IMG/VR virus record: IMGVR_UViG_3300034012_003212
Span: 1-64,000 of that record
Direction: 5' to 3' (one strand)
DNA length: 64,000 nucleotides
In this document: piece by piece, positions 7,467 to 20,990 of the stretch
How the letters are laid out: every line of letters starts with the position of its first letter
How positions within the stretch are numbered: position 1 is the stretch's first letter
The notes under the pieces: generated by a model
Seen by the model: the letters and a program-made list of their open reading frames with translations, nothing else
Databases searched by the model: none
Told to the model about the DNA's origin: nothing
Translations under genes and position numbers: made by a program

Positions 7467-7688
7467 TTCACTAACATTACAAGTACCATAAATGGCAACA
7501 GCACTTTCATTTTTTCTCATGATCCTTGTTTGCGAAATAGTGATATACGGATCATACAGGTTGGTCGTGGCCATCATCGATTTTATACACAAACATCAGT
7601 AGCATTTGCTGCTATAAACCTCGATTGTGTGAATTACGGTGATACACCTAACCCGTGCGTATTTCTATTTATACTAACAACAGAATCC

Positions 7689-7886
7689 ATGGACTTAGAG
7701 AATGCTAATGTTAAGATTTTTAACTTCTTGCGCACCTCTGTGTGTAACTCCGTGTATGACTCCATATGGGACCCCAGAAGGGACTCCACATGGGACTCCG
7801 TATGGGACTCCTTGAGGAATCCCGTGTTGGACTCCGTTGTTATTAGATTACAGGAACCCATAAGAGAAGAAAGGAAACGAGGATGA
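7689..7886 (+). CDS. SVxx array unit 1 (65 aa)
   Basis: MDLENA head; start reassigned from 7530. Confidence 0.7.
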   Translation: MDLENANVKIFNFLRTSVCNSVYDSIWDPRRDSTWDSVWDSLRNPVLDSVVIRLQEPIREERKRG

Positions 7887-8086
7887 ACTTAAAGAATATT
7901 GATATTAAGATTGGTAGGTCCATGCGGATCTCCGTGGAAAAATCCGCGTGGAACTACGTGTTGGACTCCGTGAGGCACTCCGAGTGGAATTCCGTGTGGT
8001 GGTCCGTGAGTTACTACGTGGAGAATTCCGCGTTGGACTCCGTGAATGATGGACTACAAAGACTCATAAGACAAGAAAGGAAATAA
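7883..8086 (+). CDS. SVxx array unit 2 (67 aa)
   Basis: MNL head, SVxx core, ATGA overlap. Confidence 0.75.
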   Translation: MNLKNIDIKIGRSMRISVEKSAWNYVLDSVRHSEWNSVWWSVSYYVENSALDSVNDGLQRLIRQERK

Positions 8087-8088
8087 GG

Positions 8089-8283
8089 ATGAACTTAGAG
8101 AATGTTAACTATAAGATCTGTGATTCTGCGTATGTATCCTCGTGGAACTCTGTGAGGGGCTCTGTGGTGGTCTCCGTGTGGAACTCTGTGAGTAACTCCG
8201 TGAGTAACTCCGTGAATGATAGACTACAAGAACCCATAAGAGAAGAAAGAGGAAGCGAAGATGAACTTAGAGAATGTTGGTAA
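8089..8283 (+). CDS. SVxx array unit 3 (64 aa, shifted tail)
   Basis: Tail runs 23 nt into unit 4. Confidence 0.7.
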   Translation: MNLENVNYKICDSAYVSSWNSVRGSVVVSVWNSVSNSVSNSVNDRLQEPIREERGSEDELRECW

Positions 8284-8455
8284 AAATATAGAATTCGCAT
8301 CGATCTCCATGGAAAACTTCGCGTTGGGCTCCGTATGGGACTCCTCTATGTACTACTCCATATGTGACTCTGTGAATTTCTTCGTGGAAAACTCAGTGGA
8401 AAACTCAGTGAATTTTAGACTACAGCAACCCATAAGACAAAAAAAACAGGGATGA
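8261..8455 (+). CDS. SVxx array unit 4 (64 aa)
   Basis: Head, core and tail present. Confidence 0.75.
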   Translation: MNLENVGKNIEFASISMENFALGSVWDSSMYYSICDSVNFFVENSVENSVNFRLQQPIRQKKQG

Positions 8456-8646
8456 ACTTAAAGGATGTTGAAGATAAGATTGAGGAGTCTGTGTCATACC
8501 CGTTGCACTCCGTGAGGGACTCCGTGAGGAATTCCATTAGCAACTCCATATGGCCCTCCAATTGGTACTCCGTGTGGAACTCCGTGGGGGGCTCTGTGAA
8601 TATTGGACTAAAAGGATCCATAAGAAAAGAAAGGAAACGAGGATGA
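8452..8646 (+). CDS. SVxx array unit 5 (64 aa)
   Basis: Head, core and tail; ATGA overlap. Confidence 0.75.
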   Translation: MNLKDVEDKIEESVSYPLHSVRDSVRNSISNSIWPSNWYSVWNSVGGSVNIGLKGSIRKERKRG

Positions 8647-8855
8647 ACTTAGAGAATGTTGGTAGGAAGATTTGGGATTACCCTAGGTCAGACTATATGT
8701 TGAACGATGTGTTTGATTGTGTGTATGGATCCGCCTTTACCTTCGCGCGGGACTCCGCGTCCGGTTTCGGGAGGGACTCTGTGTTTGAACCCGCGTGGGA
8801 ATCCGTGTATTATGGAGTGCAAGAACCCATAAGACAAGAATGGGAACAAGAATGA
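8643..8855 (+). CDS. SVxx array unit 6 (70 aa)
   Basis: Internal start of track ORF 8550-8855. Confidence 0.75.
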   Translation: MNLENVGRKIWDYPRSDYMLNDVFDCVYGSAFTFARDSASGFGRDSVFEPAWESVYYGVQEPIRQEWEQE

Positions 8856-9061
8856 ACTTAGAGAATGTTGATAATAAGATTGGTAAGTCCGTGGAGAACT
8901 CCGTTTTGGGCTCCGTGTGGAACTCCGTGTGGAACTCAATGGAGGACTCTGCGGGGAACTCCGTATGGTGCTTTGTGGGGGACTCTGTGGAGGACTCTGT
9001 GCAGAATGGACTACAAGAATCCATAAGAGAAGAGAGAAAACGAAAGAGGAAACGAGGATGA
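8852..9061 (+). CDS. SVxx array unit 7 (69 aa)
   Basis: Identical to unit 21. Confidence 0.75.
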   Translation: MNLENVDNKIGKSVENSVLGSVWNSVWNSMEDSAGNSVWCFVGDSVEDSVQNGLQESIREERKRKRKRG

Positions 9062-9267
9062 ACTTAGAGAATGTTAATTATAAGATCTGTGATTCTGCGT
9101 ATGTATACTCGTGGAGCTCCGTGAGGGACTCTGCGTGGAACTCTGTGATGGACTCCGTGTGGGGGGTGGTGTGGGCATCCGTGGATCATCCCATGAGTAA
9201 CTCCGTGGGGGACTCTGTGGATTTTGGACTACAAAGACCCATACGAGAAGAAAGGAGTCAGGGATGA
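9058..9267 (+). CDS. SVxx array unit 8 (69 aa)
   Basis: 5' part nearly identical to unit 3. Confidence 0.75.
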   Translation: MNLENVNYKICDSAYVYSWSSVRDSAWNSVMDSVWGVVWASVDHPMSNSVGDSVDFGLQRPIREERSQG

Positions 9268-9482
9268 ACTTAGAGAATGTTGGATATATGAGTGTGAATT
9301 ATGTGAGTGACTTGGTGAGTTTATCCATGAGAGACTCCGCGTGGAACTCCGTGTGGGACTTTTTGAGGGACTCCGTGGGGAACTCTGTGAGGGACTCTGT
9401 GGTGGTCTCCGTGTGGAACCCCGTGTGGGACTCCGTGAATATTGGACTACAAGAACCCATAAGAGAAGAAAGGGGCCGGTAA
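9264..9482 (+). CDS. SVxx array unit 9 (72 aa)
   Basis: TAA stop abuts the next ATG. Confidence 0.75.
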   Translation: MNLENVGYMSVNYVSDLVSLSMRDSAWNSVWDFLRDSVGNSVRDSVVVSVWNPVWDSVNIGLQEPIREERGR

Positions 9483-9692
9483 ATGAACTTAGAGAATGTT
9501 AGAGATAAGATTGGGAACTCCGTGAGTATCTCCGTGAATAACTCCGTGTGGTTGTCCGTGTGGAACTCCGTGGATAACACCATGTGGAACTCCGTGAGGA
9601 ACTCCGTGTATTTCTCCATGGGGAACTCCGTGAGAAACTCCGTGAATTTTAGACTACAAAGACCCATACGAGAAGAAAGGAGTCAGGGATGA
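9483..9692 (+). CDS. SVxx array unit 10 (69 aa)
   Basis: Head, core and tail present. Confidence 0.75.
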   Translation: MNLENVRDKIGNSVSISVNNSVWLSVWNSVDNTMWNSVRNSVYFSMGNSVRNSVNFRLQRPIREERSQG

Positions 9693-9874
9693 ACTTAGAG
9701 AATGTTAAAGATAATATTATGAACTCCGTGAGGAACTCCGTGTATTTCTCCGTGGGGAACTCCGTGTGGGACTCCGTGTGGTACTCCGTGTGGCGCTCCA
9801 CGCAGAACTCCGTGAGGAAGTCCGTGGATATTGGACTAACAGAACCCATACTACGAGAAAGGAGACGAAGATGA
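9689..9874 (+). CDS. SVxx array unit 11 (61 aa)
   Basis: ATGA overlap. Confidence 0.75.
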   Translation: MNLENVKDNIMNSVRNSVYFSVGNSVWDSVWYSVWRSTQNSVRKSVDIGLTEPILRERRRR

Positions 9875-10077
9875 ACTTAAAGAGTATTGAGGATGAGATT
9901 CATTCATGGATTGACTCCGTGGAGAGTTCCCTGAAAAACTCCATGTGGAATTACGTGTGTATTTACAGGTCGTATTCCGTGTGCGACCCCGTGTATAGCT
10001 TTGTTGAGAACTCTGTGCGGGATTCTGTTTATATTAGAATACAAAGACCTATAATAGAAGAATTAAAACGAAGATGA
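9871..10077 (+). CDS. SVxx array unit 12 (68 aa)
   Basis: ATGA overlap. Confidence 0.75.
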   Translation: MNLKSIEDEIHSWIDSVESSLKNSMWNYVCIYRSYSVCDPVYSFVENSVRDSVYIRIQRPIIEELKRR

Positions 10078-10250
10078 ACTTAAAGAATGTTGAAAATATG
10101 ATTTGGGAATCCGTGAGGGACTCCTTGTGGTATCCCATGCGGATATCTATATCAAACTCCGTGAAAAAGTCCGTGTGGGTCTCCGCTAGGGAATCTGTTT
10201 ATTATGGAGGAATACAACTACCCATAGCACGAGAAAGGAGACGGGGATGA
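10074..10250 (+). CDS. SVxx array unit 13 (58 aa)
   Basis: Hand translated; below track cutoff. Confidence 0.75.
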   Translation: MNLKNVENMIWESVRDSLWYPMRISISNSVKKSVWVSARESVYYGGIQLPIARERRRG

Positions 10251-10444
10251 ACTTAGAAGATGTTGGTAGGAAGATTGGGGGCTCCATGGATGACTTCGTG
10301 ATGAACTCCGTGTGGTGGTCCGTGGCCAACTCCGTGTGGAACTCCGTGTGGAACTCCGTGTACAACCCCGTGTGGAACTTTGTGAGGAACTCGGTGTATG
10401 ACGGAATAAAACTACCCATAAGAGTAGAGAGGAAACGAAGATGA
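10247..10444 (+). CDS. SVxx array unit 14 (65 aa)
   Basis: ATGA overlap. Confidence 0.75.
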   Translation: MNLEDVGRKIGGSMDDFVMNSVWWSVANSVWNSVWNSVYNPVWNFVRNSVYDGIKLPIRVERKRR

Positions 10445-10650
10445 ACTTAGAGCATGTTGAAAATAAGATTCGGGATTTTGTAAATATCTCAGTGGGGTTT
10501 TCTGTACAGGAATTTGCGTGGAACACCATGACTAAACCCGCGTGGTATTCCATATGGTGCCCCGCGTATAGCTCTGTGGAGAACTCCATGTGGGACTCCG
10601 TGAATATTGGACTACAAAAACCTGTAAGAGAAGAAAGAAAACAAAGATGA
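10441..10650 (+). CDS. SVxx array unit 15 (69 aa)
   Basis: ATGA overlap. Confidence 0.75.
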   Translation: MNLEHVENKIRDFVNISVGFSVQEFAWNTMTKPAWYSIWCPAYSSVENSMWDSVNIGLQKPVREERKQR

Positions 10651-10820
10651 ACTTAGTGCATGTTGGACATAAGATTGTGAAGTCCGTGGAGAACTCCGTG
10701 TGGAACTCCGTGTGGAACTCCGTGTGGAACTCCGTGAGGTTCTCCGTGTGGGACTCCGTTTTGGACTCCGTGAAGACTAGACTACAATTACCCATAAGAG
10801 AAGAAAGGGTACAGGGATGA
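10647..10820 (+). CDS. SVxx array unit 16 (57 aa)
   Basis: ATGA overlap. Confidence 0.75.
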   Translation: MNLVHVGHKIVKSVENSVWNSVWNSVWNSVRFSVWDSVLDSVKTRLQLPIREERVQG

Positions 10821-11011
10821 ACTCAGAGAATGTTAGTGGGAAGATTTGGAAGTTTCGGAGCTCCGTAGATAACTCCGTGTGGAACTTCGTGTGGAACTCT
10901 GTGAGGTTCCCCGGGAGGAACTCGGTGAGGGACTCTGTGAGGAACTCCGTGTGGGACTCTGTAAATATTGGACTAAAAGAACCCATAAGAGAAGAGAGGA
11001 AACAGGGATGA
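10817..11011 (+). CDS. SVxx array unit 17 (64 aa)
   Basis: ATGA overlap. Confidence 0.75.
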   Translation: MNSENVSGKIWKFRSSVDNSVWNFVWNSVRFPGRNSVRDSVRNSVWDSVNIGLKEPIREERKQG

Positions 11012-11193
11012 ACTTAGAGAGGGTTGAAGATAAGATTTGGGGCTACGTAGAGTATTCCGTATGGATATCTGTGGATAAACTTGTGTGGGACTCCGTGTGG
11101 TACTCCGTGTTTGACTCTGTATGGAACTCCGTAAGGGACTCTGTGAATTTTAGACTCCAAGAACCCATAAGAGAAGAGATGAAACAAAGATGA
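11008..11193 (+). CDS. SVxx array unit 18 (61 aa)
   Basis: ATGA overlap. Confidence 0.75.
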   Translation: MNLERVEDKIWGYVEYSVWISVDKLVWDSVWYSVFDSVWNSVRDSVNFRLQEPIREEMKQR

Positions 11194-11387
11194 ACTTAGA
11201 GAATGTTGGAAATAAAATTAGAACAAACGTATGGTATTATGAGTGGGGACATAGTTTCAACTATGCTAATGAATCGTTAGGACGTTCCATATATTTATCT
11301 GTTTATGCCCACATCTTTGATGGCATATTGAACTCTTTATATATTAGACTCCGAGAACCCATAATAGCACAAAAGAAACAGGTATGA
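11190..11387 (+). CDS. SVxx array unit 19 (65 aa, diverged non-repetitive core)
   Basis: Head and tail conserved, core unique. Confidence 0.75.
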   Translation: MNLENVGNKIRTNVWYYEWGHSFNYANESLGRSIYLSVYAHIFDGILNSLYIRLREPIIAQKKQV

Positions 11388-11581
11388 ACTTAGAGAATGC
11401 TAGAGATAAGATTGCGAACTCATTGTGGAAATCCGTGGAGGGTCCTGTGTGTACCTCCACGGGGAAATCCGTGCAGGACGATGGGTGGTTCCCCCTGATG
11501 ACCTCCGTGTGGAACTCCGTGAGGGACTCAGTGGATATTGGACTAACAGAACCCATAAGAAAAGAAAGGAAACAAGGATGA
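11384..11581 (+). CDS. SVxx array unit 20 (65 aa)
   Basis: ATGA overlap. Confidence 0.75.
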   Translation: MNLENARDKIANSLWKSVEGPVCTSTGKSVQDDGWFPLMTSVWNSVRDSVDIGLTEPIRKERKQG

Positions 11582-11787
11582 ACTTAGAGAATGTTGATAA
11601 TAAGATTGGTAAGTCCGTGGAGAACTCCGTTTTGGGCTCCGTGTGGAACTCCGTGTGGAACTCAATGGAGGACTCTGCGGGGAACTCCGTATGGTGCTTT
11701 GTGGGGGACTCTGTGGAGGACTCTGTGCAGAATGGACTACAAGAATCCATAAGAGAAGAGAGAAAACGAAAGAGGAAACGAGGATGA
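11578..11787 (+). CDS. SVxx array unit 21 (69 aa)
   Basis: Identical to unit 7. Confidence 0.75.
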   Translation: MNLENVDNKIGKSVENSVLGSVWNSVWNSMEDSAGNSVWCFVGDSVEDSVQNGLQESIREERKRKRKRG

Positions 11788-11981
11788 ACTTAGAGAATGT
11801 TAATTATAAGATTGGGAACTCGGTGAGGGACTCTGTGAACAACTCCTTGTGGAACTCCGTGTGGGACTCTGTGTTTAACCCTGTGAGGTACTCTGTATGG
11901 GATTCTGTGAATGACTCCATGGGGAGCTCTGTGAATATTGGACTAAAAGGATCCATAAGAAAAGAAAGGAAACAAGGATGA
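11784..11981 (+). CDS. SVxx array unit 22 (65 aa)
   Basis: Tail shared with unit 5. Confidence 0.75.
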   Translation: MNLENVNYKIGNSVRDSVNNSLWNSVWDSVFNPVRYSVWDSVNDSMGSSVNIGLKGSIRKERKQG

Positions 11982-12175
11982 ACTTAGAGCCGATTGATAA
12001 CAAGATTTGGATCTCCATACGGGACTCCGTGGATAACACCGTGCGGAACTCCGTGAATAAATCCGCGTGGAACCACGTAAGTTTCTTCGTGTGGAACTCC
12101 GTTTTGGACTCCGTGTGGATCTCTGTGAATATTGGACTACAAAACCCCATAAGAGAAGAGAGGAAACAGGGATGA
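11978..12175 (+). CDS. SVxx array unit 23 (65 aa)
   Basis: ATGA overlap. Confidence 0.75.
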   Translation: MNLEPIDNKIWISIRDSVDNTVRNSVNKSAWNHVSFFVWNSVLDSVWISVNIGLQNPIREERKQG

Positions 12176-12378
12176 ACTTAGAGAGTATTGAGGATGAGAT
12201 TCATTCATGGATTGACTCCGTTTCGGGCTCCATGTGGAAACCTGTGTGGGATTATATGTTGTACTCCGCGAGGGGCTCCGTGTGGGCCTCCGTGATGGAC
12301 TCCGCTGGGGACTATGTGGAGGACTCTGTGCAGAATGGACTACAAGAACACATAAGAGAAGAAAGGGCCGGTAAATGA
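12172..12378 (+). CDS. SVxx array unit 24 (68 aa)
   Basis: Head shared with unit 12. Confidence 0.75.
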   Translation: MNLESIEDEIHSWIDSVSGSMWKPVWDYMLYSARGSVWASVMDSAGDYVEDSVQNGLQEHIREERAGK

Positions 12379-12581
12379 ACTTAGAGAATGTTGATAAACC
12401 ATATTTTCACATTGTAGATAACACCCTATGGAATCGTGTGTACTCAGTATGGAAATCGTCATTAACAGTTTCCTCACATAATTTCGTGCGTGATTCTGTA
12501 GATATATCCATGAGATCTGTACAACTCTCGTTGCACGAGGGCGTATTAAGACCCGTAAGAGAAGAAAGAAAACAAGGATGA
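12375..12581 (+). CDS. SVxx array unit 25 (68 aa, diverged core)
   Basis: Head and tail conserved. Confidence 0.75.
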   Translation: MNLENVDKPYFHIVDNTLWNRVYSVWKSSLTVSSHNFVRDSVDISMRSVQLSLHEGVLRPVREERKQG

Positions 12582-12739
12582 ACTTAGAGGATGTTGGATA
12601 TAAGATCGGTGATTCTGTGTGTGTATCCGTGTGGTATTCTGTGAGTGACTATGCGTGGAACTCTGTGCAGGACTCCATAAAGGACCTTGCGTATAATGGG
12701 CTAAAAGAACCCATAAGAGAAGATAACAAACAAAGATGA
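12578..12739 (+). CDS. SVxx array unit 26 (53 aa)
   Basis: Hand translated. Confidence 0.75.
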   Translation: MNLEDVGYKIGDSVCVSVWYSVSDYAWNSVQDSIKDLAYNGLKEPIREDNKQR

Positions 12740-12909
12740 ACTTAGAGAATGTTGGAACTAAGGTTTGGGGCTCCGTGTGGAACTCCATGAGGTTCTTCGA
12801 GAGGGACTCCATGTGGGACTCCGTGAGGGACTCTATGTATAACTCCGTGTGGGACTCCGTGTTCGATGGGTTACAACTACCAATAAGAAAAGAGGGGAAA
12901 CAAGGATGA
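12736..12909 (+). CDS. SVxx array unit 27 (57 aa)
   Basis: Hand translated; head shared with unit 31. Confidence 0.75.
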   Translation: MNLENVGTKVWGSVWNSMRFFERDSMWDSVRDSMYNSVWDSVFDGLQLPIRKEGKQG

Positions 12910-13103
12910 ACTTAGAGAATGTTAAAGATAGGATTTGGTACTCCGTGGGGAACTCCGTGAGTGACCCCATGCGGAAATCCGTGTGGGACTTTTTGAGGGA
13001 CTCCGTGAAGTATCCTGTGTATAACTCCGTGGTGGTCTCCGTGTGGGACTCCGTGGATATTGGACTACAAGAACCCATAAGAGAAGAAAGGGCACAGGGA
13101 TGA
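12906..13103 (+). CDS. SVxx array unit 28 (65 aa)
   Basis: ATGA overlap. Confidence 0.75.
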   Translation: MNLENVKDRIWYSVGNSVSDPMRKSVWDFLRDSVKYPVYNSVVVSVWDSVDIGLQEPIREERAQG

Positions 13104-13270
13104 ACTTAGAATCGGTTGGTGTGAAGATAAGAGACACCGTGTGGAACTCCGTGTGGCCCTCCAATTGGTACTCCGTGTGGAACTCCGTGTTTGACCCCGT
13201 GAGGAACTCCGTGTGGGACTCCTTGAATATTGGACTACAAGAACCCATAAGAGAAGAAAGGGGCCGGTAA
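13100..13270 (+). CDS. SVxx array unit 29 (56 aa)
   Basis: Core shared with unit 33. Confidence 0.75.
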   Translation: MNLESVGVKIRDTVWNSVWPSNWYSVWNSVFDPVRNSVWDSLNIGLQEPIREERGR

Positions 13271-13528
13271 ATGAACTTAGAGAATGTTGGACATAAGATT
13301 TGGGGCTCCGTGTGGAACTCCATGAGGAAATTCGTGGGTATCTCCGTGAGGGTCTCTGCGTGGAAATCTGTGAGGTACTCCATGGGTATCTCCGTGGGAG
13401 ACTCTGTGTGGGACTCCGTGAAGGGCTCCGTGGGGGTCTCCGTGTTGAACTCTGTGTATGGAATACAAGACGCAATAAGAGAAGAAAGATTCAACAATGA
13501 GGCGGCACAAAAAAATATTTTTTTTTGA
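13271..13528 (+). CDS. SVxx array unit 30 (85 aa, tail broken by inserted module)
   Basis: Junction motif is cut after GAAGAAAG (13488); the frame runs on into promoter DNA. Confidence 0.7.
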   Translation: MNLENVGHKIWGSVWNSMRKFVGISVRVSAWKSVRYSMGISVGDSVWDSVKGSVGVSVLNSVYGIQDAIREERFNNEAAQKNIFF

Positions 13529-13551
13529 AAGTAGGATTGTGTATGTTTGCA
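13509..13551 (+). promoter_or_regulatory. Bacteroidota-type promoter P1 upstream of DUF6745-like gene
   Basis: A7-TA-T9-G, then TATGTTTG at 13542-13549. Confidence 0.7.
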
Positions 13552-13613
13552 TAGATATTTTTTCCAGGGAATATGAACCTGATTTGACATCAAGATTTTT
13601 TTAGTTTTCCAAT

Positions 13614-13653
13614 AAAATATTTTTTTTTGAAATCAGAAGTACGTATATTTGCA
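13614..13653 (+). promoter_or_regulatory. Bacteroidota-type promoter P2 upstream of DUF6745-like gene
   Basis: A4-TA-T9-G, then TATATTTG at 13644-13651; same spacing as P1, 102 bp downstream. Confidence 0.7.
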
Positions 13654-13699
13654 GAGGGTATAACCTCACAGTTTTTACAACTTTTTAAGGATAGCCATT

Positions 13700-14692
13700 A
13701 TGGCAAAAAAATATTCACCAAGCAATCCGCTTGAGAAACTCACTCCTGAAATGGAGGCGCTCATCCCAGTCGTCAGGGATGAATGGATTAACCGAGCATA
13801 CAAAGGGTTGAATCCAAATGATATTGACGAGAAGAAGGTGAAGAGTGCTGTACATTGGATATACAAAAAATCGGACTTGCCCAAGCCGATGGTCATCATA
13901 ACGGATTCGCCAAAAGCTGCTCAAGATGCAGCAAATGAATTGTATAAGAAGCATGTTGACCCATCAGCAAAGCGTCAGTATTTTCCATTTTCTGACAGTC
14001 TTTCTGTATCCGACTTCCGCTGGGTTGCATTCTATGATTACTTCACCCGCATTGGCGTCTTGCAAGACAAGACATTCAATAAATACATGGAGTACACAAA
14101 ACTTGGCATTTATGACACAATCAAACTTCACGATGTTTGTATTGTTGTGAAAATGCCTGAGTATGTTAAATCCACTATTGTGCGTGATGTTCGCGTCCCG
14201 CACAGTGAGGATTCTCCTGCTGTTAAGTTCATTGATGGTGATTCTTATTATTTCTGGAATGGTACATTGGTTCCGGAGAAATGGATCATGCGCAAAGACG
14301 AGATCACACAGAATGATATCATCTCAGAAGACAATGCCGAAAAGCGTCGTTGTCTCATGGAAATCCTTGGAGCAAAGAGGTATTATGACATCATCTCTGA
14401 TGGAAAGGGTCTTAAACTCATTGACGAGGACACAGACAATCAGGGATTCCCTATGAGATTGTATGAGACAACAAAGAATGATTCTATCGTCAACAAAAAG
14501 GTTCAATTCCTTGAAGTGACTGATCCATCAACAGGGCGAGTGTATAACATCTACCCTCCTAATCAGAATGCAAAGAATGTATGGGATGCGAAGGCACAGA
14601 CATTCAGTTCTGAGAAATTGTACGTCCGTCAGGGTGATGTTGGACTGACGAAGATAGGATACGATGAAGCGCATCCTGTGCAAGAAACATAA
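13700..14692 (+). CDS. DUF6745-like protein (330 aa)
   Basis: KLTPE.EALIP..RDEWI, DSP, W.AFYDYF, YFWNG..VPE.WI, I..E.NAEKRRCLME.LG, V.DPSTGR.Y...P and C-terminal RQGDV motifs. Confidence 0.7.
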   Translation: MAKKYSPSNPLEKLTPEMEALIPVVRDEWINRAYKGLNPNDIDEKKVKSAVHWIYKKSDLPKPMVIITDSPKAAQDAANELYKKHVDPSAKRQYFPFSDSLSVSDFRWVAFYDYFTRIGVLQDKTFNKYMEYTKLGIYDTIKLHDVCIVVKMPEYVKSTIVRDVRVPHSEDSPAVKFIDGDSYYFWNGTLVPEKWIMRKDEITQNDIISEDNAEKRRCLMEILGAKRYYDIISDGKGLKLIDEDTDNQGFPMRLYETTKNDSIVNKKVQFLEVTDPSTGRVYNIYPPNQNAKNVWDAKAQTFSSEKLYVRQGDVGLTKIGYDEAHPVQET

Positions 14693-14709
14693 TGTAATTT
14701 TTATAGTAT

Positions 14710-14718
14710 AATATATAC
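14710..14718 (+). promoter_or_regulatory. Candidate late-promoter motif (AATATATAC)
   Basis: ATATATA motif upstream of 14752; AGGAG at 14742-14746. Confidence 0.4.
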
Positions 14719-14751
14719 ACCTAATTAACTTTTTTTTCAATAGGAGATTTT

Positions 14752-15048
14752 ATGGATAAGTCAGAAAGAATCCGCAGAGTGATTGCTCGTGGTGAGCATT
14801 CCAACCATTCACATGTTGTGTGTGGTGATGATGTAACAATTCGTGAAGAGAAGGGCACAATTTTTGTCACAGTTGGCAATAGTGGTGCAGTTCTTCGTCA
14901 CTTGCTTGAGATGGAGTACATCGAAACAGGCAAGGAAGTATGGACAAAGGAACATGAAGATGTGCCGCTTCCTCAGGGTGAATATAAATTTGTTCCCCAG
15001 ATTGAGTACAATCCGCTCGATGAAACCATCCAAAGAACAAAGGACTAA
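14752..15048 (+). CDS. Small His-motif beta protein, usual DUF6745 partner
   Basis: ARGE.SNHSH...LRH...EHEDVPLPQGEYK..PQIEYNP......KD resembles the GE.tGHaH/HeEH..i.lp.G.Y...Q.EY partner family (recalled). Confidence 0.7.
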   Translation: MDKSERIRRVIARGEHSNHSHVVCGDDVTIREEKGTIFVTVGNSGAVLRHLLEMEYIETGKEVWTKEHEDVPLPQGEYKFVPQIEYNPLDETIQRTKD

Positions 15049-15075
15049 TCATATTAGTTCAAAAGATTGGTACAT

Positions 15076-15109
15076 AAAAATGGCACGCCTTAAACGTGCC
15101 ATTTTTTTT
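15076..15109 (+). terminator. Intrinsic terminator (possibly bidirectional)
   Basis: A5-TGGCACG-CCTTAAA-CGTGCCA-T8. Confidence 0.85.
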
Positions 15110-15125
15110 AACAGAGGAAACAAAG

Positions 15126-15323
15126 ATGAACTTAGAGAATGTTGGAACTAAGGTTTGGGACTCCATGTGGAACTCCATGAGGTTCTTCGAGAGGGACTCC
15201 ATGTGGGACTCCGTGTGGAACTCCGTGTGGGGTTCCGTAAGGGTCTCCGTGTGGGACTCTGTGTGGGATTCTGTTTATATTAGAATACAAAGACCTATAA
15301 TAGAAGAATTAAAACGAAGATGA
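15126..15323 (+). CDS. SVxx array unit 31 (65 aa)
   Basis: Preceded by the 3' half of a junction motif. Confidence 0.75.
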   Translation: MNLENVGTKVWDSMWNSMRFFERDSMWDSVWNSVWGSVRVSVWDSVWDSVYIRIQRPIIEELKRR

Positions 15324-15505
15324 ACTTAGAGAATGTTGGATATGAGATTTGGAAATCCGTGAGTTCCTCCGTGAGGAACTCTGTGGATGACTCCGCGTGG
15401 AACTCCGTGTGGGGTTCCGTGAGGGTCTCCGTGTGGGACTCTGTGCGGGATTCTGTTTATATTAGAATACAAAGACCTATAATAGAAGAATTAAAACGAA
15501 GATGA
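15320..15505 (+). CDS. SVxx array unit 32 (61 aa)
   Basis: Tail shared with units 12 and 31. Confidence 0.75.
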   Translation: MNLENVGYEIWKSVSSSVRNSVDDSAWNSVWGSVRVSVWDSVRDSVYIRIQRPIIEELKRR

Positions 15506-15723
15506 ACTTAGAGATTGTTGAAGATAAGATTTGGAGCTCCGTGGAGTATTCCGTGTGGATCTCTATGGATAAAATCGTGTGGAACTCCGTGTGGCCCTCC
15601 AATTGGTACTCCGTGTGGAACTCCGTGTTTGACCCCGTGAGGAACTCTGTGATGGACCCTGTGAGGGACTCTGTTTATGGTGGATTACAAATACCCATAA
15701 GACAAGAAAGGGAACGAGGATGA
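15502..15723 (+). CDS. SVxx array unit 33 (73 aa)
   Basis: ATGA overlap. Confidence 0.75.
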   Translation: MNLEIVEDKIWSSVEYSVWISMDKIVWNSVWPSNWYSVWNSVFDPVRNSVMDPVRDSVYGGLQIPIRQERERG

Positions 15724-15905
15724 ACTTAGAGAATGTTAAAGATAAGATTTGGAACTCCGTGAGGAACTCCGTGTATTTCTCCATGAAGAACTCCATGAGG
15801 AAATCTGCATGGAACTCCGTGATGGGCTCTGTGTGGGCCTTTGTGTGGGACTCTGTTTATGGTGGACTACAAGAACCCATAAGAGAAGAAAGGAGACAAG
15901 GATGA
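15720..15905 (+). CDS. SVxx array unit 34 (61 aa)
   Basis: ATGA overlap. Confidence 0.75.
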   Translation: MNLENVKDKIWNSVRNSVYFSMKNSMRKSAWNSVMGSVWAFVWDSVYGGLQEPIREERRQG

Positions 15906-16108
15906 ACTTAGAGCAGGTTGAATATAAGATTGGTAACTCCTTGTATGACTCCAAGTGGAACTCTGTGAGGTTCTCCGTGAGGAACTCCGTGTGGAAGTCC
16001 CTGTTGAGCGTGTGGGACTCCGTGTGGAAATCCGTGTTGGTCTCCGTGAGGGACTCTGTGCAGAATGGACTAAAAAACCCCATAAGAGAAGAATGGGGGC
16101 AAGAATGA
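15902..16108 (+). CDS. SVxx array unit 35 (68 aa)
   Basis: ATGA overlap. Confidence 0.75.
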   Translation: MNLEQVEYKIGNSLYDSKWNSVRFSVRNSVWKSLLSVWDSVWKSVLVSVRDSVQNGLKNPIREEWGQE

Positions 16109-16302
16109 ACTTAGATCTGGTTGGTGGGAAGATTTGGGATTCCATGTTGAACTCCGTGTGGGAATCCGTGTGGAACTCCGTGTTTGACTCCGTGAGGGAC
16201 TCTGTGGGGGGCTCCGTGAAGTATTCCGCATGGAACTCCGTGTGGGACTCTGTGAAAGTTGGACTACAAGAACCCATAAGAGAAGAAAGGAAACGAGGAT
16301 GA
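16105..16302 (+). CDS. SVxx array unit 36 (65 aa)
   Basis: ATGA overlap. Confidence 0.75.
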   Translation: MNLDLVGGKIWDSMLNSVWESVWNSVFDSVRDSVGGSVKYSAWNSVWDSVKVGLQEPIREERKRG

Positions 16303-16484
16303 ACTTAGAGCATGTTGAATATAAGATTGGTAACTCCGTGTATGACTCCATGTGGAACTCTGTGTGGGGTTCCGTGAGGGTCTCCGTGTGGGACTCCGTG
16401 GTGGTTTCCGTGGCGTATTTTGTGGGGGACTCCGTGAATATTAGACTACAGATACCCATAAGACAAGAAAGGGAACAGGAATGA
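16299..16484 (+). CDS. SVxx array unit 37 (61 aa)
   Basis: ATGA overlap. Confidence 0.75.
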   Translation: MNLEHVEYKIGNSVYDSMWNSVWGSVRVSVWDSVVVSVAYFVGDSVNIRLQIPIRQEREQE

Positions 16485-16735
16485 ACTTAGAGCCGGTTGA
16501 ATATAAGATTGGTAACGCCGTGTATGACTCCAAGTGGAACTCTGTGAGGTTCTCCGTGTGGAACTCCGTGTGGAAGTCCCTGTTGAGCGTGTGGGACTCC
16601 GTGTGGAAATCCGTGTTGGTCTCCGTGAGGGACTCTGTGGGGGGCTCCGTGAAGTATTCCGCATGGAACTCCGTGAGGGATTCTGTGTATTTTGGACTAA
16701 CAGAACCCATAAGACAAGAAAGGAAACGGGGATGA
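16481..16735 (+). CDS. SVxx array unit 38 (84 aa, chimera of units 35 and 36)
   Basis: 5' core matches unit 35 and 3' core matches unit 36. Confidence 0.75.
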   Translation: MNLEPVEYKIGNAVYDSKWNSVRFSVWNSVWKSLLSVWDSVWKSVLVSVRDSVGGSVKYSAWNSVRDSVYFGLTEPIRQERKRG

Positions 16736-16851
16736 ACTTAGAGCATGTTGGTAGAAAGATTTGGGAATCCTTGAAGAACTTTGCGTGGGATTTTGTGGGC
16801 ATTGGACACAAAAACACCCATAAGACGAGAAAGAGAAAAATGGGGACGAGG
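16732..16851 (+). pseudogene. SVxx array unit 39, shortened and frameshifted, fused in frame to unit 40
   Basis: GGACACAAAAACACCCAT has one extra nt versus canonical GGACTACAAGAACCCAT; no stop before 17025. Confidence 0.65.
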
Positions 16852-17025
16852 ATGAACTTAGAGAATGTTGGTAGGAAGATTGATATCCGCATGTGGTTCT
16901 CCGTGAGGATATCCGCGGAGAACCACACATTAAACTCCGTGGATATCTTCGTGTATTTCCCCGTGAGGGACTCTGTGTATGATGGAATACAACTACCCAT
17001 AAGAGAAGAAAAGAAACAAGGATGA
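16852..17025 (+). CDS. SVxx array unit 40 (57 aa)
   Basis: Own ATG at 16852. Confidence 0.7.
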   Translation: MNLENVGRKIDIRMWFSVRISAENHTLNSVDIFVYFPVRDSVYDGIQLPIREEKKQG

Positions 17026-17177
17026 ACTTAGAGAATGTTGGATATAAGATTTGGGATTTCGCGCCCATCCGATTGGAACAACCCACATGGTACTCTGTGA
17101 TGGAACCTGTGAATATTAGACTAATACAATCCATAAGTAACGAAAGGGAACACGAAGATGAACTTAGAGAGTGTTAG
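17022..17177 (+). CDS. SVxx array unit 41 (51 aa, shifted tail)
   Basis: Hand translated; overlaps unit 42 by 20 nt. Confidence 0.65.
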   Translation: MNLENVGYKIWDFAPIRLEQPTWYSVMEPVNIRLIQSISNEREHEDELREC

Positions 17178-17355
17178 TTGGAAGATTTCAAGATGTGTAC
17201 ATTCTTATGTGTATATTCCTGCTGAAAGTTTCATATTGAACTCCGTGAATGTCTCACGTTGGATTTCTATATGGGATTTTACTATGGATCCGTTATTACA
17301 ATCGGTTAACAACAGGATACAAACGCATATAAGACAAGAAAGGGGACGGGGATGA
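17158..17355 (+). CDS. SVxx array unit 42 (65 aa, diverged core)
   Basis: Head and tail conserved. Confidence 0.75.
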   Translation: MNLESVSWKISRCVHSYVYIPAESFILNSVNVSRWISIWDFTMDPLLQSVNNRIQTHIRQERGRG

Positions 17356-17486
17356 ACTTAGAGAATGTTAAAGATAAGATTTGGAACTCCGTGAGGAACT
17401 CCGTGGAGATTTCCGTGTGGGACTCTGTGGGAAAATCTGTGGATGGACTACACGGATCCATAATAAAAGAAAGGGAACAGGGATGA
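17352..17486 (+). CDS. SVxx array unit 43 (44 aa)
   Basis: Hand translated. Confidence 0.7.
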   Translation: MNLENVKDKIWNSVRNSVEISVWDSVGKSVDGLHGSIIKEREQG

Positions 17487-17689
17487 ACTTAAATGCTTTT
17501 ACTACAAATAATATAAAGGTGAGTAACTTCATGTGGAACTCCGTAGCGGACTCCGTGTGGAACTCCGTGTTGAACTCCGTGGAGATTTCCGTGTGGGGCT
17601 CCGTGTATAACTCCGTGAGGGACCCTGTGTGGAACTCTGTTTATGATGGACTTCAAGAACCCATAAGAGAAGAAAGGAAAAAAAGATGA
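17483..17689 (+). CDS. SVxx array unit 44 (68 aa)
   Basis: ATGA overlap. Confidence 0.75.
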   Translation: MNLNAFTTNNIKVSNFMWNSVADSVWNSVLNSVEISVWGSVYNSVRDPVWNSVYDGLQEPIREERKKR

Positions 17690-17883
17690 ACTTAGAGAAT
17701 GTTGAAGATAAGATTTGGGAATCCGTAGGGAACTCCGTGTGGGACTCCGTGGTGGTCTCCGTGAGGGAGTCCGTGGTGGTCTCCGTGAGGGGCTCTGTGG
17801 CGTATTCTATGGGGTACTTTGTGGCGAACTCCATGGATATTGGACTGCAAGAACCCATAAGAGAACAAAGGGAAAGAAGATGA
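17686..17883 (+). CDS. SVxx array unit 45 (65 aa)
   Basis: ATGA overlap. Confidence 0.75.
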   Translation: MNLENVEDKIWESVGNSVWDSVVVSVRESVVVSVRGSVAYSMGYFVANSMDIGLQEPIREQRERR

Positions 17884-18065
17884 ACTTGGCGTATGTTGGT
17901 ATTGAGATTGGGGACTACGTGATGGTCTCCGCGCTGGAGTCCGTGAGGATTTTCGTGCCAGACTCTGTAAGTGAGTCTGTGGATGACTTCGTGTGGGTCT
18001 CCTTGAGGGCCTCCGTGAATTTTAGACTACAAAGACCCATACGAGAAGAAAGGAGTCAGGGATGA
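17880..18065 (+). CDS. SVxx array unit 46 (61 aa)
   Basis: ATGA overlap. Confidence 0.75.
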   Translation: MNLAYVGIEIGDYVMVSALESVRIFVPDSVSESVDDFVWVSLRASVNFRLQRPIREERSQG

Positions 18066-18296
18066 ACTTAGAGAATGTTAGTGTTAAGATTTGGAACTCC
18101 GTGTGGTGGTCCGTGGGAAACTCCGTGTGGGTCTCCATGCGGGACTTTTTGAGGAGGGATTCCGTGGGGAACTCTGTGAGGGACTCCGTGGTGGTCTCCG
18201 TGAGGGACTCCGTGGATCTCCGTGAGGAACTCTGTATATAACTCAGTGGATTTTAGACTACAAGAACCCATAAGACAAGAAAGGAGACAGGGATGA
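18062..18296 (+). pseudogene. SVxx array unit 47, frameshifted
   Basis: Frameshift near GTGGATCTCCGT (~18215) gives TAA at 18239-18241; the tail motif is intact in another frame. Confidence 0.7.
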
Positions 18297-18487
18297 ACTT
18301 AGAGAATGTTAAAGATAAAATTTGGAACTCCGTGAGGAACTCCGTGTATATCTCCATGGAGAACTCCGTGTGGTACTCCATGAGGAAATCTGCATGGAAC
18401 TCCGTGAGGAACTCTGTGTGGGACTTTGTGTGGGACTCTGTGGATGGACTACAAGAACCCATAAGACAAGAAAGGAGACAGGGATGA
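18293..18487 (+). CDS. SVxx array unit 48 (64 aa)
   Basis: Close to unit 34. Confidence 0.75.
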   Translation: MNLENVKDKIWNSVRNSVYISMENSVWYSMRKSAWNSVRNSVWDFVWDSVDGLQEPIRQERRQG

Positions 18488-18621
18488 ACTTAGAGAATGT
18501 TAGAGATAGGATTTGGTACTCCGTGAGGAACTCCGTGATGGGCTCTGCGAGGATCTCTGTGAGGGATTCTGTGTATTTTGGACTAACAGAACCCATAAGA
18601 CAAGAAAGGAGACAGGGATGA
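18484..18621 (+). CDS. SVxx array unit 49 (45 aa)
   Basis: ATGA overlap. Confidence 0.75.
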   Translation: MNLENVRDRIWYSVRNSVMGSARISVRDSVYFGLTEPIRQERRQG

Positions 18622-18791
18622 ACTTAGAGAATGTTAGAGATAGGATTTGGTACTCCGTGAGGAACTCCGTGTATTTCTCCATGGAGAACTCCGCGGGGTA
18701 CTCCGTGGATAAATCCGTGAGGGACCCTGTGAGGGACTCTGTGGATTTTGGACTAGCAGCACCCATAAGACAAGAAAGGAGACAGGGATGA
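18618..18791 (+). CDS. SVxx array unit 50 (57 aa)
   Basis: Head identical to unit 49. Confidence 0.75.
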   Translation: MNLENVRDRIWYSVRNSVYFSMENSAGYSVDKSVRDPVRDSVDFGLAAPIRQERRQG

Positions 18792-18979
18792 ACTTAGAGA
18801 ATGTTAGAGATAAAATTTGGAACTCCGTGGATACCCCCGTGTGGCACTCCGTTTTGGACTCTGTGAATAACTCCTTTTTCTTGAGGGAATCCGTGTGGAA
18901 CTCTGCGAGGAACTCCGTGTGGAAGTCTGTGAATACTGGACTACAGTACCTAATAAGACGAGAAAGGGAACAGGAATGA
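18788..18979 (+). CDS. SVxx array unit 51 (63 aa)
   Basis: ATGA overlap. Confidence 0.75.
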   Translation: MNLENVRDKIWNSVDTPVWHSVLDSVNNSFFLRESVWNSARNSVWKSVNTGLQYLIRREREQE

Positions 18980-19158
18980 ACTTAGAGAATGTTAGAGATA
19001 TGATTTGGTACATAGGAGACGATGTTTTCTCGAGATTTGTTAAAATCCTCTGGTACCCGCCAGCAGAATCAGGGTATCAAAACATATTGACTCCTATGTG
19101 TGACTGCTTATACAATAGACTACAGACATCTATAAGACACCAAAGATGGCTCGGATGA
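18976..19158 (+). CDS. SVxx array unit 52 (60 aa, diverged core)
   Basis: Head conserved, core unique. Confidence 0.7.
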   Translation: MNLENVRDMIWYIGDDVFSRFVKILWYPPAESGYQNILTPMCDCLYNRLQTSIRHQRWLG

Positions 19159-19280
19159 ACTTAGATAATATTTGGAAATCCATGAGGCGTTCCGTGGATA
19201 AATCCATGAATAACTCCGCGTGGAACTCCGTGAATTTTAGACTGCAAAACCCCGTAAGACGAGAAAGAAGACATGGATGA
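19155..19280 (+). CDS. SVxx array unit 53 (41 aa)
   Basis: Hand translated; shortest intact unit. Confidence 0.7.
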   Translation: MNLDNIWKSMRRSVDKSMNNSAWNSVNFRLQNPVRRERRHG

Positions 19281-19474
19281 ATTTAACTGATGTTGATGGT
19301 ATAACCCAACATTTCATATGGCGTCTTATTACACGGCCCGCATGGGATTCTATTGTGAATTTTACAGGTGGATCCATGAGATCAGTTGATCACCCGGTGA
19401 AGGAATCGGTATGTAAAAGTCTACAAATGAAAATAAGATTCAACGTGCCGGTGGTAAAAATTCTATCGGATTAA
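19277..19474 (+). CDS. SVxx array unit 54 (65 aa, highly diverged)
   Basis: MNLTDV head with ATGA overlap. Confidence 0.6.
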   Translation: MNLTDVDGITQHFIWRLITRPAWDSIVNFTGGSMRSVDHPVKESVCKSLQMKIRFNVPVVKILSD

Positions 19475-19538
19475 TTCAATGGCGCCGTGTTAGATAATTT
19501 ATTGATATGATTTGTTTGTTAAAAAAAAGGAAATAGTC

Positions 19539-19760
19539 ATGAATTTACAAAACGCTGATTGTTTAAATGGATCAGTATTAGAATCCATTCTAAAATCTTG
19601 TTTTAGTTCCATCGAGAAACCTTTAGTGGAAATCACTTTGAGTTCAGTCGACCCCAAGATGTTAGAATATATTTGGGAAAACACGAGAGGAATGTTGTGG
19701 AACTCTGTTCTTTTAAGATTACAAAATCCAATAAGGGACGATTTCGCTACCAAAATTTAG
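19539..19760 (+). CDS. SVxx array unit 55 (73 aa, highly diverged terminal copy)
   Basis: MNLQNA head and WNSVLLRLQNPIR tail. Confidence 0.6.
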   Translation: MNLQNADCLNGSVLESILKSCFSSIEKPLVEITLSSVDPKMLEYIWENTRGMLWNSVLLRLQNPIRDDFATKI

Positions 19761-19816
19761 AACAATAGCCGCAGAGGGCTTTGTTGAATACCGTCATTTT
19801 TAGCAATCGTTGCGAT

Positions 19817-19825
19817 AATATATAC
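19817..19825 (+). promoter_or_regulatory. Candidate late-promoter motif (AATATATAC)
   Basis: 16 nt before the ATG at 19842. Confidence 0.4.
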
Positions 19826-19841
19826 AATAAACTTAAGTTCG

Positions 19842-20990
19842 ATGAAAAATGTGTTATTATCATTCAACGATTTCATAAAAAATAGGCTAAATGAAGGGGT
19901 TCGAGTCAGAGAAGACGGGGAATCAGGATGGATATTTGATTTTGATCGTGATCGGGAAGAAGATTTCATGTCATTGAAATTTTTAAACAGACCATCAAGG
20001 ACGCAAATATACAAGAATACTGACGTTAGCTATGAGTATTTTTATTGTTACAAGCTTGAAAAGGAAGAAGATACATCGGATTTTGTGAAGGCTGTAAAAT
20101 ACATAGATGAAGCACTCATAAATCCACAGGATCTTGAAAGATTTGTGAAAAAGGGAGTGATCGCACTCGACAAGAAACACGACCTGACTAAATTTAATTG
20201 CATCATCTACCCAAAATCGACTTCGAAGATATTAACAGAATTCGCCAAATTTGCTTCAGAAAAAAGTGGTGTGGCAAAACTGATCCCAGACGCACTTGTT
20301 AAAGTTCCAAATGAGGACATCACGTTAGATTTTGCAGCAATAGGAAGGCTCAAAGACCCAAAGACGAGGAAGGAAATTCTTAGGAACTTCAATAGAGCTG
20401 TAAAGGATCCGAATGGAAATTGGAAACGAAAGCCATTCAAGATGACAGATGTATATGTCAAATTTCGTAAGTTCATAACAAACTTTTTGAAATTCGGGGA
20501 TTCTGTGATAGAAAATAACCGGATGAAAAGAGACGTCTATAATGCAATAACTGCAAGTAATGTTCTCCTCATAGATGACTTCAGGACAACGGGGTCCACG
20601 ATCAAGGAGATGATCAAGAACATCGCAGAAATAGGTCCTAAACACATCGTCATATGTTGTCTGATTGTAATAGAAAAGTACAAGGAAAAGGACGTAGAAC
20701 GAGATAGAGACCGGATGGAAAGGAATATGCTTGACAATGCCGGAATACCATACAATGTCATAAAGAAGGACGGAAAAGACGTAAGAGTGGTCGACAAATC
20801 AAAGCTTGATAGGAAGTACATGGAATATGTATACAGTCATGAAGCGGGCGATTGGATCAAAAACCCGGGATTTGTGGGTGAATTTGAACACCAAGAAAGA
20901 ATAGAAGATAAATTCGGGAACGTGATACCCAATCCTTTTTATGACCCAAACTATAAACCCCTGAAAGAATCAAAAAAATTTTTCAGGTAA
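19842..20990 (+). CDS. Phosphoribosyltransferase-domain protein
   Basis: VLLIDDFRTTGSTI PRPP-binding motif; N-terminal MK...F..F.....NE leader. Confidence 0.7.
   Translation: MKNVLLSFNDFIKNRLNEGVRVREDGESGWIFDFDRDREEDFMSLKFLNRPSRTQIYKNTDVSYEYFYCYKLEKEEDTSDFVKAVKYIDEALINPQDLERFVKKGVIALDKKHDLTKFNCIIYPKSTSKILTEFAKFASEKSGVAKLIPDALVKVPNEDITLDFAAIGRLKDPKTRKEILRNFNRAVKDPNGNWKRKPFKMTDVYVKFRKFITNFLKFGDSVIENNRMKRDVYNAITASNVLLIDDFRTTGSTIKEMIKNIAEIGPKHIVICCLIVIEKYKEKDVERDRDRMERNMLDNAGIPYNVIKKDGKDVRVVDKSKLDRKYMEYVYSHEAGDWIKNPGFVGEFEHQERIEDKFGNVIPNPFYDPNYKPLKESKKFFR

Follow-up and report, generated by a model that had tools for sequence, protein, structure and literature searches.

Reversed codon variability in a tandem array of phage mini-genes and its probable origin in concerted evolution and selection on the protein

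A tandem array of 55 small genes, carried by a large phage genome, reverses the variability normally expected within codons. The array lies in the window analyzed here, which is the first 64 kb (64,000 nucleotides) of the IMG/VR virus record IMGVR_UViG_3300034012_003212, a linear record of 260,658 bp (genome G000) that CheckV places at 88% completeness. The genes encode mini-proteins built from modules of four amino acids, x4-Ser-Val-x3, where x3 and x4 are the variable residues. In the codons for these residues, the first and second positions vary more than the third. The reversal is real, specific to this gene family, and spread over the whole of its genes; the initial annotation, which described the wobble base as fixed, overstated it. 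We consider it probable that the reversal reflects concerted evolution of a founder 12-mer, combined with purifying selection on Ser and Val and with diversifying or relaxed selection at x3 and x4.

The 55 open reading frames (ORFs), all on the + strand and 41-97 amino acids (aa) long, extend from 7689 to 19760. The feature is therefore larger than the stretch 9483-17883 to which it was originally assigned. The array is broken once only, by a gene for a DUF6745 protein together with a 98-aa gene. Its parts are as follows.

7689-13528, + strand: array block 1, 30 tandem small genes of 41-85 aa, from the ORF list and the junction table
15126-19760, + strand: array block 2, a further 25 tandem small genes belonging to this family, with degeneracy increasing toward the 3' end (19155-19760)
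9483-9692, + strand: unit 10, a typical unit, 69 aa with 11 modules
10647-10820, + strand: unit used for structure and complex predictions, 57 aa
17686-17883, + strand: unit 45, 65 aa, with a near-identical orthologue in strain L001 (97.5% at the nucleotide level)
16732-17025, + strand: fused unit, 97 aa, a truncated unit reading into the next, with an internal start at 16852
13700-14692, + strand: DUF6745 (PF20530) gene, 330 aa, Pfam E = 4.4e-11
14752-15048, + strand: 98-aa gene immediately 3' of the DUF6745 gene

In the paralogue alignment, each unit has a leader (MNLENVxxKI), 5-15 modules, and a tail (xxGLQEPIREERKQG), with unit lengths and spacing that follow 170+12k nucleotides. The junction table shows that nearly all junctions are ATGA, where the stop TGA overlaps the next ATG (a gap of -4). 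The tail codons for Glu-Glu-Arg-Lys (GAAGAAAGGAAAC...) put a motif resembling AGGA or GGAG 6-10 nucleotides before the next start. Judged by these junctions, the mini-genes are predicted to be translationally coupled. No module was found elsewhere in the genome, and a scan for promoters and terminators gave only what shuffled sequence gives. The 97-aa fusion also occurs in L001-L004 (in L001 at 2567-2860), which marks it as a rearrangement that is old and tolerated, not an error of assembly.

The codon pattern was tabulated from 340 in-frame modules having TCCGTG with at most one mismatch; the 279 internal ones were analyzed. At codon positions 1, 2, and 3, the entropy is 1.66, 1.38, and 1.01 for x3, and 1.52, 1.20, and 1.04 for x4. 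Thus, in the full tabulation, third positions are less variable than either first or second. The third base is G in 217 of the 279 x3 codons (78%) and C in 221 of the 279 x4 codons (79%), a strong bias rather than a fixed base. If the residues found were encoded as they are in 118 long ORFs of this phage, 143.6 NNG at x3 and 83.5 NNC at x4 would be expected (z = 13.6 and 18.8). The hand counts that first drew attention to the pattern were correct (NNC in 9 of 11 x4 codons of unit 10; NNG in 9 of 10 x3 codons and NNC in 7 of 10 x4 codons of unit 45); at x3, unit 10 has NNG in only 5 of 11.

The pattern holds in the x3/x4 core, where it was noticed, but it is not confined there. Ser is encoded by TCC in 84% of modules (13% in the genome), and Val by GTG in 95% (24% in the genome). 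The codons of leader and tail behave alike, with diversities of 0.336, 0.284, and 0.227 at positions 1, 2, and 3. Tail codon -6, for example, is found as GAA, CGA, CAA, AAA, or AGA, with diversities of 0.62, 0.40, and 0.00. A control family in the same genome, resembling leucine-rich repeats (LRRs) and represented by 43 copies, shows the normal order (0.217, 0.240, and 0.394).

A subclass of x3 codons ends in T. At x3, GAT occurs 11 times and GAC never, and TAT 11 times against one TAC; at x4, instead, GAC (68) far outnumbers GAT (6). These T-ending x3 codons (GAT, AAT, TAT) match those of the module that adjoins the tail, and the subclass looks like a second founder type.

The founder 12-mer of the array is AAC TCC GTG TGG, read as x4-Ser-Val-x3. 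The alternatives at x3 (AGG, 56; GGG, 14; GAG, 14; TTG, 13) lie one or two steps from TGG, and those at x4 (GAC, 68; GTC, 17; GGC, 13; TTC, 12) one or two steps from AAC. These replacements keep the founder wobble: 56 AGG are found against 2 AGA, 14 GGG against 5 GGA or GGT, and 17 GTC against 2 GTA or GTT. At x4, the silent AAT occurs 5 times against 86 AAC. A non-founder base stands at positions 1 and 2 of x3 and x4 in 55%, 35%, 57%, and 28% of cases, in that order, whereas the four-fold silent sites of the same modules are non-founder in 11.6% (Fisher p = 3e-47). Thus, the first and second positions of x3 and x4 change 2.4-4.9 times as often as four-fold sites.

Over all module pairs, the ratio pN/pS by the Nei-Gojobori method (NG86) is 1.6 for x3, 1.0 for x4, and 0.27 for Ser. 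Because these ratios are modest, only relaxed-to-diversifying selection is claimed for x3 and x4; positive selection is unproven. Of the three causes first suggested, diversifying selection is the one left standing, with a reservation: the excess over four-fold sites favors it if those sites are neutral. Only five pairs of equal-length paralogues share at least 80% identity, too few for substitution statistics.

The explanation that we favor has four steps. First, the array descends from AAC TCC GTG TGG, and gene conversion, together with slippage and unequal crossing-over, has let it grow and kept it homogeneous; the wobble positions of x3 and x4, like the other silent positions, are accordingly identical by descent. 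Second, purifying selection on the protein holds Ser and Val, as the data show. Third, x3 and x4 are free to change or positively selected, with changes at codon positions 1 and 2 (TGG to AGG, GGG, TTG, or GAG; AAC to GAC, GTC, GGC, or TTC) retaining the founder wobble; here the pattern is observed, and we infer its selective cause. Fourth, third-base changes are rarer partly because they turn TGG into a stop or Cys and AAC into Lys. Beyond these steps, if the models presented below are correct, the array would supply many alternative variable helices for one conserved DUF6745 scaffold.

One may ask, of course, whether any protein function is needed. The array might be a selfish or neutral accordion of recent expansion, shaped only by a founder effect and by the removal of stops and Cys. 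The pN/pS values speak for such an accordion, as do the random order of x3 and x4 residues, the degenerate units at the 3' end, and the clustering of x3 residues in the second-base-G column (W, R, G, S, C), which has little chemical logic. Against this, 5% of possible substitutions create a stop, and at the observed divergence about 13 of 54 units are expected to be intact neutrally; about 48 of 54 are seen (intact meaning a canonically coupled ORF, tallied from the junction table). The mini-gene ORFs are under selection. Further, Ser/Val, leader, and tail are conserved as protein although the lineages encode them differently, related phages sampled in several lakes and years retain the array and its synteny with DUF6745, positions 1 and 2 of x3 and x4 outpace four-fold sites, and a predicted complex, described below, passes its controls. 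We regard the accordion without protein function as unlikely.

Concerted evolution finds evidence outside the window as well. A scan of viral contigs by nucleotide pattern found phages with DUF6745 proteins bearing long runs of TCC GTG NGG GMC. Because such a scan is biased in its ascertainment, a protein-profile search was used. The profile of 45 mini-proteins matched 1618 cluster representatives at E <= 0.001, the best of them proteins of 370-570 aa that consist of an N-domain, 20-60 SVxx modules, and a C-domain, and that Pfam assigns to DUF6745. In these repeats, which lie in cis, x3 is mostly W, R, or G, and x4 mostly D, N, or A. Matches to L029/P0010 (on a 41.9-Mb eukaryotic contig), P0092, and P0148 were rejected as unrelated low-complexity SxK/SLK repeats.

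In eight DUF6745 arrays picked by the protein profile, and not by nucleotide pattern, the founder Ser-Val codons are TCA-GTA, AGT-GTA, TCC-GTG (in two), TCT-GTG, TCA-GTC, AGC-GTC, and AGT-GTC. A ninth independent array, the mini-genes of locus L034, has TCT-GTT, giving eight distinct pairs among nine arrays. Within arrays, the diversity at the Ser/Val wobble is 0-0.44, the x3 position-1 diversity is 0.49-0.69 throughout, and the x3/x4 wobble is usually near-constant. Ser is conserved across lineages through both TCN and AGY codons; therefore, Ser-Val is conserved as protein. The founder codons differ between arrays; therefore, there is no universal DNA motif. This, in turn, means that each array was homogenized or refounded after its lineage split, which is concerted evolution.

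These comparisons bear on a second alternative, raised in the initial annotation as a DNA- or RNA-level constraint on CTCCGTG. Here, CTCCGTGnnGnn would serve as a protein-binding site, a methylation site, or an RNA structure, and its coding would be incidental. TCC and GTG are indeed non-preferred in a genome with 42% GC yet dominate the modules, and TCC-GTG recurs in the 35% GC phage L017 and in high-GC phages. The high-GC loci, however, were found by the nucleotide pattern itself, and the homologues ascertained by protein encode Ser-Val by other codons, including AGY serine. The L017 gene is a close relative, sharing even the junction sequence of the window units. RNA folding is ordinary (z-scores from -0.3 to -2.1), and ORFs are intact far above the neutral expectation. 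A function of the DNA motif as such is highly improbable.

As in other concertedly evolving repeats, whole units are gained and lost between close relatives. Between L001 and L002, two strains with about 99% identity, one 12-nucleotide module has been inserted or deleted, two genes have been duplicated, and there is a conversion tract. Over 8.5 kb they are 99.9% identical, with three isolated single-nucleotide polymorphisms, two of them in x4 codons of one gene; another stretch is 98.6% identical, with clustered differences. Run X2, another lake sample, has a 12-nucleotide insertion at 12811. Comparisons between samples rest on Logan contigs, which lose minor variants and break within the array. 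In the 99.9%-identical part, which makes up most of the aligned locus and takes in the second half of the array, x3 and x4 are unchanged between samples. The clustered contig differences are probably cross-mapped paralogues or conversion tracts.

Phages have, of course, a well-known machine for varying codons at positions 1 and 2. In the variable regions of diversity-generating retroelements (DGRs), of the type of Mtd in Bordetella phage BPP-1, AAC codons become NNC, and the fixed wobble avoids stops. The initial annotation offered this as a cause. A template AAC TCC GTG AAG, with adenines at the four variable positions, would be copied by an error-prone reverse transcriptase and returned to the array. 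The eight invariant module positions of the window array do lack adenine, NNC cannot make stops, and differences between contigs are enriched at reference A (41%, against an A content of 29%; p = 0.006). Neither of the required parts was found, however, in the 88%-complete genome. RVT_1 (PF00078) matched nothing in G000 or in G001-G004 (G001 being 93% and G003 100% complete), although positive controls responded; the relatives G001 and G003 carry the same repeat. Outside 7600-19800 there is no template, whether sought as TCCGTG-n6-TCCGTG, as three degenerate TCNGTN, or as AACTCCGTGAAG, and a six-frame search for (S[VMAI]xx)3 outside the array gave only two chance strings of 12 residues. Nor is there adenine specificity. 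Adenines in the invariant TCA, GTA, and AGT codons of sister arrays are static (diversity 0-0.11), while variable sites have founders with C, T, or G. Cytosine is nearly absent at variable positions (2-3%), x3 and x4 are constant between samples where the locus is 99.9% identical, and ordinary point changes occur also in leader, tail, and Ser/Val codons. Retrohoming of the DGR kind is therefore very hard to credit.

A third alternative, that an antisense gene in the exact-complement frame encodes (V-P-H-G)n, so that sense variation is silent there, is scarcely credible. Its arithmetic fits the window and the high-GC loci, the latter with long antisense ORFs (the complement turns W/R/G, NGG, into Pro CCN, N/D/Y/H, NAC, into Val GTN, and V/M into His), and much of the array is overlain by antisense ORFs of 60-220 aa. 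In the window, though, TAA opposite the TTA of Leu3 (41 of 43) closes the VPHG frame within units, and this frame offers no ATG. It is the wobble-sharing HTEF frame that holds the long antisense ORFs, with the same reversed pattern and with an ATG preceded by a pyrimidine-rich stretch rather than a ribosome-binding site; each module of L025 reads TGA opposite its TCA; the x3 variants of L026 are non-synonymous in antisense; and in fused homologues the sense frame runs on, unbroken, into conserved N- and C-domains.

On the - strand of the window from 7600 to 19800, nearly every unit has an antisense ORF that begins MGSCSP... and continues as (H-T-E-F)n, some of 120-220 aa (for example, 12922-13593). 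These are probably shadows that gene callers could mis-annotate. Frame +1 (T-P-C/W-G), which would restore the canonical order of variability, was rejected; it needs TGA readthrough in 31% of modules and meets TAG and TGA in each leader, and the long ORFs, ATGA junctions, and use of TGA as stop indicate the standard code.

Returning to concerted evolution with selection on the protein, we may ask what the variable residues might do. Binding between the DUF6745 protein and a mini-protein was tested because the repeat is fused to DUF6745 in cis in other phages. Modeled by AlphaFold2 (AF2) from a 45-row paralogue alignment, the mini-protein of 10647-10820 is one continuous helix over residues 3-56, with a mean predicted local distance difference test (pLDDT) score of 83.5. 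A fused DUF6745 protein is confidently modeled with its N- and C-domains folding as one unit (pLDDT > 90; predicted template modeling score, pTM, 0.72). The predicted complex of the window's DUF6745 protein with the mini-protein of 10647-10820 has interaction scores (ipSAE, from aligned errors) of 0.70, 0.70, and 0.86, against 0.00 for the best of three controls; 58 of 80 solved complexes reach this ipSAE mark, as do 2 of 110 mismatched pairs, a rough calibration given the custom alignments used. The predicted interface takes in every one of the 16 core Ser/Val residues and leaves out 7 of the 16 at x3/x4 (Fisher p = 0.007). We infer that the mini-protein may dock on DUF6745 through its Ser/Val face, leaving the x3/x4 face more exposed.

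If so, the array might be a germline repertoire, in which one DUF6745 scaffold is loaded in trans with any of about 55 helices, each displaying its x3/x4 face. We consider this less likely than not. Were it true, combinatorial surfaces would be made without reverse transcriptase, for example against variable host targets or defenses. Other phages would do likewise in cis, their DUF6745 proteins having 20-60 modules built in, and the frozen C/T or G wobble would keep rapidly changing codons away from stops.

Several points weigh against this account, in its evolutionary as well as its structural part. Values of pN/pS of 1.6 at x3 and 1.0 at x4 fit relaxed selection as well as diversifying selection. 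The argument that omega exceeds 1 takes Ser/Val wobble sites as neutral, and concerted evolution and recombination violate the assumptions of dN/dS. Neither avoidance between x3/x4 neighbors nor periodicity was found (z about -1.5), so that local heterogeneity is not visibly selected. The Atlas model of a mini-protein has a pLDDT of only 0.58, and the repeat loops out of the modeled fused protein at a pLDDT below 50. DUF6745 has no structural relatives by Foldseek at E <= 0.001, and its best VIA Z is 4.3, which gives no lead to a function. The complex score, moreover, comes from custom alignments and may reflect the model's knowledge of the fused family.

The history of the repeat can be followed in part from its arrangement. 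The window's DUF6745 protein has no central SVxx repeat, the repeats sitting in separate ORFs, and the same embedded, repeat-less gene stands inside the arrays of L001 and L002. SVxx mini-genes are found in the flanks of none of the nine cis-repeat loci; the cis repeat and the adjacent mini-gene array look to be distributed in a complementary way. To judge from its sequence, the window's DUF6745 protein has lost the repeat. At the site where homologues carry it (13985-14020 of the window, DUF6745 residues about 96-107, and the same in L001 and L002) stands FSDS[LM]SVSD[FY]RW, a stretch that looks like a vestige of one or two modules.

In L034, a metagenome scaffold of 931 bp from ENA, a second mini-gene array (162-929) directly follows the DUF6745 C-terminus. 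Its mini-genes have the leader MNI[ND]LNKKI, the tail ...KLNEYRFK, 20-nucleotide overlaps, and mostly NNT at x4. Their unlikeness to those of the window suggests more than one splitting of the repeat into mini-genes. From such arrangements, we take the repeat to have been split into mini-gene arrays in at least one phage clade, and probably in a second independent lineage.

A single mini-gene copy occurs in L017 (IMGVR_UViG_3300043773_001180, 35% GC) on the - strand at 12973-13503. Its upstream junction (gaaagggccggtaaATG) is identical to that of the window array, and the preceding gene, of 109 aa, ends in a tail-like ...LRKGR. The copy looks like an array fragment moved by recombination. DUF6745 was not found in this contig, which is 31% complete.

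The 98-aa gene appears to accompany DUF6745 elsewhere. Its product matches that of the gene after DUF6745 in L027 (4445-4756; BLASTP E = 2e-9) and, weakly, one in L021 (10280-10714; E = 0.022), and all three share the pattern GExxxHxH ... LPxGxY. Genes of about 100 aa lie directly 3' of DUF6745 in L025-L028. The companion is thus homologous in distant phages, and DUF6745 therefore seems to be a traveling two-gene cassette.

Comparison with known systems helps to place the array. With DGR variable regions it shares change at codon positions 1 and 2 with a wobble that keeps stops away, a phage genome, and variable residues on a conserved scaffold. Unlike them, it has no reverse transcriptase, template repeat, or adenine specificity; its variation is germline and, in the assembled contigs, stable between strains; and where a DGR varies one C-terminal region, the array varies 55 genes with their hundreds of modules. 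Related, too, are the cis (SVxx)n repeats of DUF6745 proteins, with which it shares the tetrapeptide, the variable positions, the frozen-wobble pattern, and the linkage to DUF6745, but the window's repeat is split into 55 coupled ORFs, each with its own conserved leader and tail.

Coding minisatellites, such as the Ser-Asp repeats of the staphylococcal adhesins Sdr and Clf, serve as low-complexity spacers without position-specific hypervariability. They resemble the array in having short in-frame repeats, homogeneous within an array and different between lineages, that change length by whole units. In the array, however, diversification is strong at two of the four residues, and the repeat exists in the form of separate, arrayed genes as well.

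Conticello and colleagues are said to have described in 2001 position-specific codon conservation in a hypervariable peptide family, the conotoxins of cone snails. There, too, framework residues keep one codon while intervening residues outpace silent sites, in a large family with conserved flanks. Conotoxins differ, of course, in being secreted toxins of eukaryotes with a Cys framework; they are neither tandem nor coupled and have no 12-nucleotide periodicity. Poxviruses reportedly offer (Elde and colleagues, 2012) a gene accordion in a large DNA virus, through amplification of K3L. In both cases a small gene multiplies in tandem within a large viral genome and its copies then diverge, but poxvirus accordions are transient, with near-identical copies, whereas the array appears stable across strains and its copies differ pairwise by about 29% even in leader and tail.

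A codon signature like that of a DGR can evidently arise without a retroelement, when a repeat is amplified and selection acts differently on its positions. Whoever scans for DGR targets by NNC-type patterns should heed this. The analysis also brings out a large, uncharacterized phage family, that of DUF6745 with a hypervariable tetrapeptide repeat. Should the mini-proteins dock as predicted, this would be a new viral way to encode a repertoire of variable binding surfaces.

Some features of the array stand apart from these questions. The ORFs at 8852-9061 and 11578-11787 encode identical 69-aa proteins with an unusual KRKRKRG tail; the pair is a recent segmental duplication inside the array, about 2.7 kb apart. 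GC skew is 0.18-0.27 over 8001-20000 of the window against about 0.03-0.12 in flanking + strand genes, a positive skew expected from the G-rich modules. Compared with the precursors of ribosomally synthesized and post-translationally modified peptides (RiPPs), the mini-proteins are conserved at both termini and have a periodic core; no RiPP enzyme was recognized near the array, whose neighbors are DUF6745 and weak PALP and PRTase matches only.

Database searches gave little more. Searching Pfam, PHROGs, and NCBIfam with the mini-proteins returned nothing beyond weak NCBIfam matches, no INPHARED phage matched the array or the baseplate region by blastn, and a search for related loci with the window DUF6745 protein confirmed none. 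The literature search found no paper naming DUF6745 and nothing relevant on hypervariable tetrapeptide repeats in phages or tandem small genes in jumbo phages.

The phage that bears the array is a freshwater jumbo myovirus. Runs containing the array region are lake and freshwater metagenomes; one of them, run X1, has 94% of the sampled words. Translation table 11 reads long ORFs cleanly, up to 1948 aa, and therefore the standard code applies. PHROG matches in the window indicate a large tailed phage:

60186-61907: baseplate wedge protein
38550-41117: tail-fiber-like repeats
29117-30667: helicase

On the - strand, 33561-59325 holds five very large ORFs (1328, 1948, 1153, 714, and 1802 aa), the four largest without a Pfam match and the 714-aa ORF without a PHROG match. 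They are presumably structural, given the adjoining baseplate and tail-fiber-like genes.

The LRR-like family that served as a control is itself extensive. About 60-70 copies of LxLxGCxGITKLPEDLxV fill some 27 kb of G000 (about 197,400-224,500). The copies end in YYNSETGFxGHEDEPGVIPxxLKHKL, and one ORF of the family, of 320 aa, lies within the window on the - strand at 26221-27183.

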